Below, piece after piece: positions 1 through 25,349 of a stretch of 64,000 bases of DNA (position 1 is the stretch's first letter; each line of letters begins with the position of its first letter). Made by a program: the position numbers and the translations under genes. The notes beneath the pieces are model-generated. The model was not told where the DNA came from. It made no database searches and saw nothing but the letters and a program-made list of their open reading frames with translations. Source of the DNA: Pelomyxa schiedti (lineage: Eukaryota > Protista > Evosea); contig JAHLWZ010000187.1 in assembly GCA_020536535.1 (NCBI GenBank), forward strand, positions 186,001 through 250,000, written 5' to 3'.

Positions 1-75
1 CTCTTCTGGGGAGATGATGGTGTCACACCCATGTTCTACATCTTCAAGGACGGTATTAAGGAGGAGAAGTATTGA
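1..75 (+). CDS. TPT1: 3' end of translationally controlled tumour protein (TCTP), partial
   Basis: Frame 1 reads LFWGDDGVTPMFYIFKDGIKEEKY*, matching the conserved TCTP C-terminus DGxTPxxxxFKDGLxEEK; the gene runs in from the left edge. Confidence 0.75.
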   Translation, partial: LFWGDDGVTPMFYIFKDGIKEEKY

Positions 76-20350: not shown

Positions 20351-20686
20351 TTCGCCTGAAAACACACATGGAGTCTGAACATCACAGACCGTTCTCCTAC
20401 CCACCCCCGGCAGACCACTCGTGGAGTTACATTGAGCTTGAGGGTCGATTGGCACCGACGGTACAACACACAACCCTCTACAACCAGCCAAACGCCACAC
20501 AACCGCCGCACGGCTCGCCATCACCAGTGATTGGTTTTCTGTTTTGTTGGAGTTTGTTGATCAAACGTGTGGAAAAGGTATCAACCAGGCTTCTCTCTTT
20601 GGAACGTTGGAAAGCAAACCAAAATGGGATTCTTAGTAATAAAGGAAAAAGATATCGTGAGGCTCAGGAACATTGTCGGTTTTTTT

Positions 20687-23600
20687 ATGTCGCTCAAAGC
20701 GCCTCCTTCAGCGAACCAAAGAGCCGTTGTCGAACTTAGCAGCACCCCGGTGGGTCGGTACAATGTGATGCTTTTGGGTGACAACACTCCTGGAAGGGTA
20801 TGTGGTGCTTGTTGGTTTGTTTGTGTTGTTTGTTTGTTTTGTTGTTGATACTCGACACACCTTGTTAAGACATAGGCTATGTGTCTTTATTTTGTTGCGT
20901 TGTGACCACCAGCCACCAGATGGCTCTTGTTGAGGAGATGAAGGCACTACACATTGGGCCACTGCCAACTCCCAGGACTGAGGAGTATTCCGCACCGGGA
21001 GCACCTGGGTGTTCCTCATGGGACCTTTTATACCACTCTTGCGGTACGTTGGTATGTGTTGGCAGTGTATTTGTAATTTTGGACTCTGATATTCACGGAT
21101 GTTTTCCTATTTGAAAATAGAGGGGCTTCTGGTTGGAGTCACACTCAATGGTGAGACTTTCCACTTCCTCTGGGCATTTTTCATCAGTTTTCAAAAAAAC
21201 AAAGATGTGTCTAATATGTGGGGTGACTGGAACAGGCCGTACAAGTATGATTCAAAAGCTGATGCTGCAATTTTGTGTTTCTCATTGCGGAGCAATGACA
21301 CTCTGAACAGTGTCAGAAACAAGGTTATAAATCAATACTTCCACACTTTTTACCATGGGCATTTGAAACAGTGGTTTCCTGAAATATTCAACAACAAGCG
21401 TGGTGTCCCCTGCTTCCTTGTTGGACTGAATCATGATATCCCTACCTCTCCCTATTATAAACACACTCCAGTGACACATCAGCAAGGAATTCAAGTATTT
21501 TTGTTTCTATCTTCTTCCTTTTTGAAATGTCTCAAAAGGCAGCCCGTGATATTGGGGCTGTTTATTATTACGAAGTTGAGAATGCTTCTGCAGTTGTCAA
21601 ATCACTGATATCACGACTGGTTCACACTCTCCAGCACCCCATCTCATGCAACACTGATAAGTGGGAGAGCCTTGAGCTGTCCTATACCAGGTAATCTTGT
21701 GCAAAGGATGATTATTCTTTCTCACTGTTAAACTCCACAACGCAAACCAAGTTATGGGCACGTCTGCTCAGTGCATAACGATCACCTATACATTTTTGGA
21801 GGTGGCCCAAATAGTGCTCAAACAACCGAAGGTATCTCATTTGACCTGAATTCTAGAACTCGCACTTCCATGTCTGATCCACGTGGCGAGTGCACGAGAT
21901 TCCCTGCACACTGTGCATCAAGTGATGGGAGATATGTTTACTTTTATGGTGGAAGGAAATTCACAGTACCCGTAAACTCATTCAATGTTTTTGATGCCGA
22001 GAATCATTCGTGGAATAAATTGAATCCTCCCGTAGATCGCCCTGCCACCTATGGAGCAAGCCTTTGCTTGTGCGTTGTCTTATGTGATTTTACAGCCGTT
22101 TATGTCCTCCTGTTTTCGAACTAACTTCGCCCAAGGTTTCGCAACAGTCTCTTTCTTTTTGGTGGATCTCACGACCCCGGTGCCTCTAGTAGTCTCTATG
22201 GTAGTTATTCCTTTCCTGTCTGGAGAAGTGACTTATCTTCCATGTAAAACGGCAGTCTATAAGCTGGATACACAGACGTGGAGTGCAATTCCTCCCAGAA
22301 ATGCTGCCCCTGAACCTCGTTATCATCACAGTGCCTTTGTCAAGTGCCTTTTCCTCTCATTTATCATTGCTTTTTTAAACACCACAAAAGGGGAAACAAG
22401 ATGTTTATTCTATGTGGAATTGGGGAGAAAAATGTGAAATACAATGACGTTTGGACCACTAATCTCCTGGAAGCTTCTGCATTCGGCCGGGCAACTTGGG
22501 TGAAGGTCACATGCCAAGGGACGCCTCCCACGCCACAACGCGGACATGCAGGGTGCTTGTTGACTGAAGATATGTTTATGTTTGTTGGTTCAACAAACTC
22601 AAATCCCTCTGCCGAATTTTTCAAGTGAGTGAATCCCTGACTCACCCAAGTAATGATATTAATTCATACACCTCTGGTCAAATACTGATGATTAGCATTT
22701 TTCCGAGTAGTTCTATCCAATAATATCATACTAATAATTATTGTGATAATATCGAGTTACTGTGAATAACCACAGGTTTCAGATTTGACACAAACACATT
22801 CACATGGACGAAATTATTGCTTCCTTATTCACCACGCTCCAGAGAGGTTGAAATTCATTTTTACACACTCCCTCTCAAACATAACCAGTTTTTTGGGATT
22901 GCCTCATGGAGGCAGCATGTTATACTCATTGGTGGGATGATACGAGACACTTCATCTGCAGTTTTGTCTGATTGCCACATCTCATTCACACCATCGTTGT
23001 TTGCTACACCTCCAAAAACAAGTGCCTCTACTACCACAAATGGCGCATCACTTGTGTCATCATCACTTCCACAAGATCACTCTTCACCTGTTCAACTTCC
23101 ACAAGACTGTTGGGTACAAATTACATCCTACCTGGAACCAGAAACAATCTGCCTGCTGGGAGCTGTACTTCACACTTCCTGCTCAATCAACCTCACTCCC
23201 AGAAAAAGGTTTCACGAACTTTGTACAAGATTTGCGTCAGCGATTTGGTGTGGAGGAGGTTTTTGCCTGTTGAATTTCACTCTCAAACATGTCTGAAAAC
23301 CTTATGTATGTGTCCAGTCAAATTCCTTTTGCTAACCACAATGAAGGTATTCCCATGTGGAAAAATGCAACTCCATTGGCAGCTATGTATAATGTTCCAA
23401 GATACACCGTATGTCTTCACATTTTAAATTAAATGGTGATATCATTGTTATTTAATAACATTTACCAAAACAACAGGGACCTGAGTCACCGTCTTGTTTC
23501 CTTGGTGATGGACAAATTCTGATGGCTGATGGAACCACCAAGTCTAAAACATCCTCACCCAACTTCCGACTCACAGTTTCCAACAGACCAGTGAGGGACG

Positions 23601-24300
23601 TGGAGGAAGGAGATTGTGTCATGACAGAACTAATGCGTGGCCGAAAAGTGGAGCAAGTGAGGGCACATCATCGTTCCAATCCTCTGAGGCTTGTATTTTT
23701 GAATGGCGTTGGTCTGACAACAGGACACCCAATCTGGCAAGTAGGTCACCAACCGAATTGGCACACTGACGCAGGTTAGTTTTTGCTCTTCCGGAATTGC
23801 AACTATATCTCCTTGTGAACGCTGGGTGCCATTCACACACTCCCATCCCCCAAATATCAAGTTTTTACAACAAAATTCATGAGTACACAGGAGAGTGGGT
23901 GCGTGCTTGTGATTCCAAGTCAGCAGAGATGAGGGTTGTTGAAAACCCCATTCTTTATGACTTTGTTCTTGCTGGTGGTCCTGTGGTGTGTCTGTGGCTT
24001 TCATAATCCCCACTAAATGAATTAAGGGTAATACAAACGCACACCACAATAAACCAAATTATTAATTTGCCCACAGGAGCCTGACCACAGTGTCATCATC
24101 AACACCGTTATTGTATGTACACTTGGGAAAGACTGTGGGCCAAACTTCAGGAACAGGTTCCCAAAGTCTGACCTCATGTATGTGTAGTAGTATCTCTCTT
24201 TTTACGATTTTTGCTCTCCAACAAACAAGCAACTCACAGGTATGGCAGTGGCTTTTGGGCCTCCTATAGCAACAAACGCAGCATTGAAACAACAGAGTGA
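20687..24300 (+). CDS. Degenerate Rho-like GTPase domain - Kelch repeats - F-box - Vint-type Hint domain protein
   Basis: VMLLGDNTPGR, DAAILCFS..NSVRNK|WFPEI..VPCFLVG and ARDIGAVYYYE (Rho-like); YIFGG/YFYGG/LIGG kelch blades; F-box LPQDCWVQITSYL..VSRTLYKICVSDLVW; GPESPS-CFLGDGQILMADG..LTTGHPI..LYDFVL..HSVIINTVIVCTLG (Hint). The GTPase-kelch, kelch-F-box and F-box-Hint junction phases were checked and are compatible. Confidence 0.78.
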
Positions 24301-24449
24301 CTTCAACAACTAAAAGGTTCCTTGTTGTGCTTTACTATTGGGCAATTCTAAGAACAATTGTTGTTGATCGAACCTTTTCCCCCATCATTTTCGACCCGTC
24401 GCCCACAAAGAAAAACAAAAAAACAACAACAAAAAAAACAGAAACCCTC

Positions 24450-25349
24450 ATGCAAAGGACACTCGTGCTTCTCAAGTCGGACGCCGTCGTGAGGAAACAA
24501 GCAGGAGTCGAGGCCGTGCGGCGCCTCCTCTCGATGTGCGCCCCCCCCGCGACGCCGGCGGGCCCGACGGCGCCCACGGCCGCGGCCGCGGACGCGTGCC
24601 GCTTCGCTTGCTTCGCCGAGGTCGCGCACGTGCCGAGGGAGCTGGCGTGCCTGCACTACTACGAGCACGTCGCCCGGGGGTTCTACAGCTTCATCGTGGA
24701 GTACCTCGCGAGCCCCTACGGCGTCGTGGTGATGGTGCTCGAGGGCAACAACGTGGTCCAGAGGGTCAGGGACATGCTGGGGCCTACTTTCGTCGACAAG
24801 GCAATGCTGGAGGAAGGTGTGTTTCTTTGGAAAATTATCAATCAATGCTTGTGTAGTGTTGGGCTTTTTATTTGGTTTTGCTATGTATACGAGATACGCG
24901 TGTGCGCGCGTATATGTTTTCAGTATTTTAGTAACACAGCCATTTAATAACGAGATATGAATTTGTATCTTGGGATTCAATGTGCTCCCCTCACTAAACG
25001 ATTGATAGGATGCCTTCGCGGACAGCATGGTGTTATGGCCGGAATGAATTTGTGCCATGCATCTGACTCCCCAGCAAGTGGCGAGCGCGAGTGCTCATTG
25101 TGGCTTTCCGCACTGAGCCTGCAGTGCGATGTGGCCAATGCCGGCAAGCTTGCCGAGGCCTACGTTGCCAAGTGGGACGGGAAGCTCCCGATTATGTCGG
25201 CACAGTTCCATGAGGTGTGTGCTCCAATGCTTGACCAGGTGAGGAAGATGCGCGAGCTGTTCAAGGCTGAGGGTGGTGATGCCATCTCTGATGATGACGC
25301 TAAGGCCATGGTGAGGCTGGCTCTCTTGGCCCTAGTCAACAGGATGTGA
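24450..25349 (+). CDS. Nucleoside diphosphate kinase with Ala/Pro insert and ~70-aa C-terminal extension
   Basis: MQRTLVLLKSDAV, VVMVLEG, GCLRGQHG, NLCHASDS (catalytic His), EREC.LW; one intron. Confidence 0.88.

Follow-up and report, generated by a model that had tools for sequence, protein, structure and literature searches.

A Kelch/F-box protein of Pelomyxa schiedti with a C-terminal Vint-type Hint domain belongs to a lineage-specific multigene family

We analyzed a 64,000-nucleotide (nt) stretch of the Pelomyxa schiedti genome (GenBank assembly GCA_020536535.1, contig JAHLWZ010000187.1, positions 186,001 to 250,000 of the forward strand; hereafter the window) and found that one plus-strand gene, at 20624-24300, encodes a Kelch-type ubiquitin-ligase adaptor whose F-box is followed directly by a Vint-type Hint domain, an arrangement that we found described nowhere. 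We are nearly certain that the encoded protein consists of a GTPase-like domain, a Kelch propeller, an F-box, a linker, a Vint-type Hint domain and a helical tail, in that order. Hint domains release or lipidate signaling ligands (Hedgehog), splice proteins (inteins) and free toxins, and the Vint domains described to date all lie, to our knowledge, behind VWA domains. The literature accessible to us on Vint, on Hint together with F-box, and on P. schiedti F-box proteins yielded no description of an F-box joined to a Hint domain. Gene positions are given in window coordinates and amino acid (aa) numbers refer to the 811-aa model that begins at ATG 20624, the features being as follows.

20624-24300, plus strand: complete gene in 19 exons, encoding 811 aa (start at ATG 20624) or 790 aa (start at ATG 20687)
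20759-21671, plus strand: degenerate Ras-superfamily GTPase-like domain (aa ~46-235; Pfam Ras)
21752-22981, plus strand: Kelch beta-propeller (aa ~241-528; Pfam), with RNA joints 22343>22391 and 22846>22889 inside
23093-23262, plus strand: F-box (aa 566-607), split by a 44-nt intron (23165-23208; joint 23164>23209)
23263-23494, plus strand: linker (aa 608-648, ~41 aa) ending in Ser648; joints 23305>23347 and 23408>23477
23495-24127, plus strand: Vint-type Hint domain (aa 649-775) in four exons; joints 23541>23587, 23774>23891 and 23985>24077
23495-23497, plus strand: codon of Cys649, Hint residue 1 and predicted nucleophile
23717-23719 and 23726-23728, plus strand: block B Thr708 and His711
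Exon 18, plus strand: D761-H762-S763 and the closing V-C-T-L-G
24128-24300, plus strand: family-specific C-terminal tail (aa 776-811), KDCG...P..D..YG.G.W and then the stop; joint 24177>24240

The gene is real and transcribed in Pelomyxa schiedti. Contigs from public runs (three libraries of single-cell RNA, all from the same 'protist metagenome' sample, and one DNA-like run) were placed on window positions 20600-24400, and two RNA contigs (1043 and 1040 nt) each ran continuously from 22887 to about 24330, with contig ends at 24327-24359. Both carried GT..AG joints at 22846>22889, 23164>23209, 23305>23347 and 23408>23477, followed by 23541>23587, 23774>23891, 23985>24077 and 24177>24240, while joint 22343>22391 came from a separate contig. 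Because the joints lie within continuous contigs, a single spliced RNA carries the F-box together with the final Kelch blade and every Hint exon, and the frame remains open across the F-box and Hint exons up to the stop codon (TGA, 24298-24300), with no stop or plausible start in the gene sequence between the two domains. The original prediction, made from the letters of this stretch, had proposed that one gene joins an F-box to a Hint domain and had named splicing over this region as its check; the RNA joints favor it, since 23305>23347 and 23408>23477 connect the two parts and the Hint exons do not form a separate transcript. The motifs it had quoted were all recovered in this one plus-strand gene by three-frame reading, namely GPESPS followed across the presumed scissile bond by CFLGDGQILMADG, then LTTGHPI, LYDFVL, HSVIINTVIVCTLG and the tail.

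The rebuilt gene has introns of 41-158 nt, all of them GT..AG, and the following exons.

Exons 1-5, plus strand: 20624-20797, 20920-21043, 21121-21150, 21205-21323, 21372-21494
Exons 6-10, plus strand: 21539-21690, 21752-22069, 22136-22200, 22256-22343, 22391-22624
Exons 11-15, plus strand: 22783-22846, 22889-23164, 23209-23305, 23347-23408, 23477-23541
Exons 16-19, plus strand: 23587-23774, 23891-23985, 24077-24177, 24240-24300

Nine 3' introns were placed from RNA joints, and the 5' introns from P0001, the GenBank protein deposited for this gene, together with alignment to paralogues. P0001 (764 aa, 100% identity) was recovered by phmmer with the Hint exon as query against 1.84 billion representative proteins; it adds two 5' introns (21151-21204 and 21324-21371), both backed by the paralogue P0003, with whose start ATG 20687 also aligns. 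The rebuilt protein is identical to P0001 as far as ...LAGGPV, and its C-terminus beyond this point is RNA-supported. The deposited model is wrong at the C-terminus and is corrected here: its ending ...GGPVVCLWLS was rejected, as donor 23985 is read through to a false stop at 24004-24006, and because of this readthrough of intron 17 the two final Hint strands are missing from P0001, as is the conserved tail (window 23986-24300). After donor 23985 the RNA and every complete paralogue go on with ...DHSVIIN...TLGKDCG..., EPDHSVIINTVIVCTLGKDCG...YGSGFW.... An initial splice model that joined GT..AG-compatible open-frame pieces was also rejected, the RNA joints and P0001 having revealed more tiny introns. 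The exon map of the original prediction had the gene, its motifs and its stop right, but kept five tiny introns as coding (21151-21204, 21324-21371, 22847-22888, 23165-23208 and 23542-23586) and misplaced another, which truly lies at 23306-23346. The retention arose because the 42-nt (22847-22888) and 45-nt (23542-23586) introns have lengths divisible by three and contain no stop codon, such that keeping them would preserve the frame. In the DNA-like run, contigs break or diverge at 20616-20660 (loose end 20616), close to the alternative start ATG 20624, a pattern that may reflect allelic or assembly variation.

Exon-by-exon Pfam scans matched Ras, Kelch, F-box-like and Vint. On P0001, Kelch reached 168 bits, and F-box-like and F-box scored 36.6 and 22.8 bits (gathering cut-offs 24.3 and 20.5); Ras and Vint too exceeded their cut-offs, and the match is not due to chance. 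The C-terminal domain is a Vint-type Hint domain: Pfam Vint scored 31.9 bits on the truncated P0001 (cut-off 27) and 46-69 bits on complete paralogues, and the Hint exon alone matched profile positions 1-70 (E = 8.6e-4). Vint was the best-scoring Pfam Hint model, the Hog-type model Hint (PF01079) remaining at 13.6 bits, under its cut-off of 29.7. Correct splicing gives the F-box as LPQDCWVQITSYLEPETICLLGAVSRTLYKICVSDLVWRRF, which reads better than in the earlier exon model, and the Hint N-terminus as CFLGDGQILMADGTTKPVRDVEEGDCV, which is more canonical than before. The Vint matches stop at profile positions 116-123 of 166 in eight proteins with a complete C-terminus (70 in P0001), and the last third of the profile (positions ~120-166) is replaced by a different conserved tail outside the Pfam match. 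No VWA or Vwaint match was obtained at E <= 0.1 in the nine family proteins scanned, nor at E <= 0.001 in P0021, P0023 and residues 1-420 of P0013. An intein-type C-terminal (His-)Asn with a Cys/Ser/Thr C-extein is likewise absent, the fold ending in V-C-T-L-G-K followed by a tail of about 35 aa and the stop.

We further examined the fold through P0003, the nearest paralogue with a complete sequence. A family profile matched PDB 8r2c (Tetrahymena Vint) at E = 2.8e-12, followed by the VMA intein, a BIL2 domain (bacterial-intein-like, BIL) and Sonic hedgehog. The AlphaFold model of P0003 residues 600-780 had a predicted local distance difference test score (pLDDT) of 85 and a predicted template modeling score (pTM) of 0.79, and its PDB matches in Foldseek were Hint domains only. 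With VIA-align, 8r2c was recovered at Z 15.9 (root-mean-square deviation 2.7 over 136 residues), BIL2 at Z 14.3 and Hedgehog (1AT0) at Z 12.7, the BIL, intein and Hedgehog matches together falling at Z of about 12-14. The cysteine of CFLG superposes on Cys258 of Hedgehog (1AT0) and on the first residue of inteins, and the fold closes at C-T-L-G, the point where inteins end; three short helices are predicted after it (positions 156-179 of the 600-780 fragment), corresponding to the tail. Structural neighbors in the AlphaFold database were Vint, VWFA and U-box proteins. In a model extending from the F-box to the end of P0003, the F-box equivalent forms four short helices (pLDDT 70-83), whereas the linker equivalent is predicted to be disordered (pLDDT < 50), which matches the expectation for an accessible scissile bond before Cys1. 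A search of the ESM Atlas with P0003 residues 535-780 gave weak leads only (score 0.72), consisting of short Vint clusters labeled Nucleocytoviricota (giant viruses), none with an F-box. Taken with the Pfam scores, these results bear out the Kelch, F-box and Vint-type Hint assignments of the original prediction, including a cysteine at structural position 1, an intact T-x-x-H, no intein-type His-Asn with a downstream nucleophile and no VWA domain in the gene.

Sequence searches recovered at least 17 P. schiedti GenBank proteins with the same Vint type, and what had been taken for a single odd gene is one member of a lineage-specific multigene family. Eleven of these proteins are full-length fusions in the order Kelch, F-box, Vint (P0001, P0003, P0007, P0009, P0010, P0012-P0016 and P0023), most of them with a GTPase-like start, and they sit on different contigs. 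In P0013 (1075 aa), a Fic/DOC domain (Pfam, 50.8 bits) precedes the GTPase-Kelch-F-box-Vint body, and in P0005, P0021 and P0026 a weak F-box-like motif and Vint follow other N-termini (P0005 without a WWE match). Outside P. schiedti, two proteins from the Mastigella eilhardi transcriptome (P0011 and P0019) combine WWE, an F-box-like motif and Vint, the F-box-like motif of P0011 bearing an inserted Cys-rich loop. Further members lie on short contigs from unidentified environmental eukaryotes, and a related gene was found at L004:3089-4200 on the 50-kb environmental contig ERZ21831265, also from an unidentified eukaryote. Across these proteins the N-terminal heads vary, and what stays constant is the unit formed by the F-box, a W-[KR]-N-x-x-P-containing linker, Vint and the tail. 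In public records the proteins are named 'hypothetical', 'galactose oxidase' or 'Kelch-type beta propeller'. Two phmmer matches, P0004 (5298 aa) and P0006 (2284 aa), were rejected as repeat-rich and spurious, with no Hint domain.

Two side observations concern paralogues. P0002 (Pelo_9435, 443 aa) contains the last Kelch blade and F-box region twice with one Vint, and resembles a fragment of a close P0003 paralogue that was wrongly assembled or predicted. At window 23699-23731, a 33-nt block (the codons of GVGLTTGHP) is common to RNA and DNA contigs, which then diverge; the diverging letters read V-F-V-H-G-Q-W-V-R-S, the sequence that follows GHP in P0007 (Pelo_3025), and because of this P0007 appears to be transcribed in the same cells.

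Conservation was then compared in two alignments, one of 14 domains with P0003 as reference and one of 12 domains. In the former, the 13 other domains are 39-51% identical to P0003, except P0002 at 83%. The position of Cys649 is invariant in both (14/14 and 12/12), as are the block B Thr and His (Thr708 and His711 in G-L-T-T-G-H-P), and Cys1 and the block B residues are also kept in the distant WWE-type and environmental relatives. Other invariants of the 14-domain alignment are C-F-L-G, G-D, G-L-T-x-x-H-P, W, F-x-L-x-G-G, D-H-S-x-I-x-N and T-L-G; the tail adds G, P and G-x-G-x-W, and its conservation equals that of the active site. In the linker motif W-[KR]-N-x-x-P, W is nearly invariant and N and P are invariant. 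This pattern of invariant residues fits a working, not a decaying, active site.

In Hint chemistry, Cys1 and the block B T-x-x-H are needed for the N-S acyl shift, and splicing further requires a C-terminal Asn and a downstream nucleophile. Given that the acyl-shift set is present and invariant and the splicing set is absent, we consider it reasonably probable that the Vint domain is autoprocessing, with cleavage predicted between Ser648 and Cys649. The protein would be cytosolic, its Kelch/F-box part acting as a substrate receptor of the Skp1-cullin-F-box (SCF) type. Vint would run the first Hint reaction, in which Cys649 attacks the Ser648 carbonyl in an N-to-S acyl shift aided by Thr708 and His711, and the thioester would then be resolved by water or another nucleophile. 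Since there is no C-terminal Asn, downstream nucleophile or C-extein, the reaction should halt at N-terminal cleavage or transfer, as in Hedgehog. The expected products are a 648-aa receptor ending about 41 residues past the F-box and a C-terminal piece of about 18 kDa (163 aa, Vint plus tail). Because its conservation matches that of the active site, the tail most likely serves to control the reaction or to choose the nucleophile, and it may correspond to the region by which other Hint proteins recognize an adduct or a sterol.

Several points weigh against this account. All three RNA libraries trace to one sample, only a single spliced RNA joint (22343>22391) falls in the 5' half of the gene, and an RNA contig at 20863-21207 is unspliced over introns 2 and 3. 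Another contig, at 23957-24105, is unspliced over intron 17; it could be pre-mRNA, DNA carry-over or a genuine isoform, and the intron-17-retaining form would presumably encode a truncated, dead Hint domain. The fold test was made on P0003, whose identity to this protein across the main Hint exon is 65%. The residue before Cys1 is variable (S, G, E or A), the junction itself not being conserved, and we know of no F-box-linked Vint, this protein included, for which cleavage has been reported.

A Hedgehog-like transfer, in which the tail would bind a specific nucleophile (a lipid or sterol-like compound, a metabolite or a protein side chain) and the receptor would be tagged or anchored, appears unlikely. 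In its favor, the tail is on a par with the active site in conservation and occupies the place in which Hedgehog and Vint proteins carry their sterol- or adduct-recognition region, and the D-H-S triad is invariant; in Hedgehog, an Asp activates the incoming cholesterol hydroxyl. However, the tail is only about 35 aa long, falls beyond the Pfam Vint match and has no detectable similarity to known recognition regions, and none of our results identifies a ligand. The protein is judged from its sequence to be cytosolic and without a signal peptide (no signal-like hydrophobic stretch was seen at the N-terminus on reading the sequence, no predictor having been run), and a folding or cleavage-regulating role would account equally well for the conservation of the tail. 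A defined adduct on the N-terminal product is correspondingly a doubtful step. That the F-box, Vint and tail would form a self-conjugating module, whose thioester joins the receptor C-terminus to a lipid, a metabolite or a partner protein, we regard as quite improbable.

Alternatively, Vint may not cleave at all but serve as a stable binding or regulatory module on the intact 811-aa protein, for example by masking the F-box or recruiting a partner, which we likewise hold to be an improbable reading. Non-cleaving Hint-like domains exist in other families, and the variable residue before Cys1 would fit an absence of selection on the junction. Yet Cys1 and the block B Thr/His are invariant in every member examined, including the WWE-type and environmental relatives, and retention of precisely the catalytic residues would not be expected of a module that does nothing but bind. 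The fusion could also be an artefact that merges a neighboring F-box/Kelch gene with a stand-alone Hint gene, given that the deposited annotation is demonstrably imperfect and RNA contigs can in principle span adjacent genes; the open, RNA-joined frame described above, its lack of any separating stop or start, the same fusion in 11 full-length P. schiedti proteins and an F-box-like motif with Vint in a Mastigella open reading frame make this highly implausible. Finally, although the structural matches include inteins and BIL domains, a splicing intein or bacterial-intein-like element can practically be discounted, as the Hint domain is C-terminal, with no C-extein, no terminal His-Asn plus Cys/Ser/Thr and no homing endonuclease, and Vint is the best match by sequence and by structure.

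Turning to the N-terminal half, the Kelch propeller matches Kelch_KLHDC2_KLHL20_DRC7 (E = 2.6e-49), Pfam Beta-prop_ATRN-LZTR1 (5.9e-32) and several single-blade Kelch models. In F-box proteins the F-box usually precedes the substrate-binding domain; here the propeller, a separate candidate substrate-binding domain, lies N-terminal of it. Pfam Ras reaches 31.9 bits on P0001 (cut-off 21.6) and covers profile positions 68-158 only. The P-loop reads LLGDNTPGR (G-D-N-T-P-G-R-M, not GxxxxGK[ST]) and the G4 motif L-N-H-D, not NKxD, whereas the paralogues P0012 and P0014 retain GxxxxGK[ST] and TKLD. Because of the degenerate P-loop and L-N-H-D, this copy probably carries a pseudo-GTPase domain. P0012, the best-kept GTPase among the paralogues, is closest to Rab5/Rab11, with Rho next, and the 'Rho-like' label of the original prediction proved too specific for what is a degenerate Ras-superfamily GTPase. 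A P-loop-like string in frame 2, GVTGTGRTS (~21204-21260), was taken as chance, overlapping the real frame and lying partly within intron 3. Downstream, the next gene (24450-25349, plus strand; Pfam NDK) is a nucleoside-diphosphate-kinase homologue whose first exon is markedly GC-rich compared with its surroundings.

We then compared the protein with known systems. Vint genes were defined with VWA and Vwaint upstream, Vint proteins were argued to be processed intracellularly, and U-box-VWA-Vint proteins were noted, a U-box being carried by four of the proteins in that study, which constitutes an earlier link between Vint and ubiquitin ligases (Burglin 2008, PMC2362128). VWA-Vwaint-Vint proteins (PF14623, 8R2C) share with our protein the Hint subtype, Cys1, T-x-x-H, a cytosolic nature and the C-terminal place of the Hint domain, and 8r2c is the best PDB match by profile and by structure, although only about 22% of residues are identical to those of the Tetrahymena domain. 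They differ in that our family has no VWA or Vwaint, in its cargo (Kelch plus F-box or WWE plus F-box-like) and in having its own KDCG...YG.G.W tail. The study of the Tetrahymena Vint crystal structure reportedly proposed ligand-regulated cleavage through an adduct-recognition region. Hedgehog/Hog (1AT0) is alike in fold, in the superposition of Cys1 on Cys258, in a closing strand of the V-x-x-C type and in an extra C-terminal region, and would be alike in logic, N-terminal cargo being freed by an N-S acyl shift without splicing; here, by contrast, there is no evident signal peptide and no known link to cholesterol, and the tail, which falls short of the sterol-recognition region in length, is unrelated to it. 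The BUBL proteins of Tetrahymena (6TMM, 6Y75) are the second-best structural match and also tie Hint chemistry to the ubiquitin system. Their BIL Hint domains flank a ubiquitin-like modifier and end in Asn; here the Hint domain follows a ubiquitin-ligase (E3) adaptor, the F-box. RhoBTB and LZTR1-type cullin adaptors resemble the protein by architecture only, with a GTPase-like domain and/or Kelch fused to a cullin-adaptor module, and have BTB (Cul3) in place of the F-box and no Hint domain.

If the Vint domain is active, these proteins would, as far as we found, be the first E3 substrate receptors whose maturation or modification depends on an autoprocessing domain of their own, and would offer a compact soluble system for learning what Vint domains do. 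Were the F-box, Vint and tail indeed self-conjugating, the ligase would be anchored or armed without the chemistry of ubiquitin-activating (E1) and ubiquitin-conjugating (E2) enzymes, and the swappable heads (GTPase-Kelch, Fic-GTPase-Kelch and WWE) would reflect a pelomyxid-specific conflict or signaling system.

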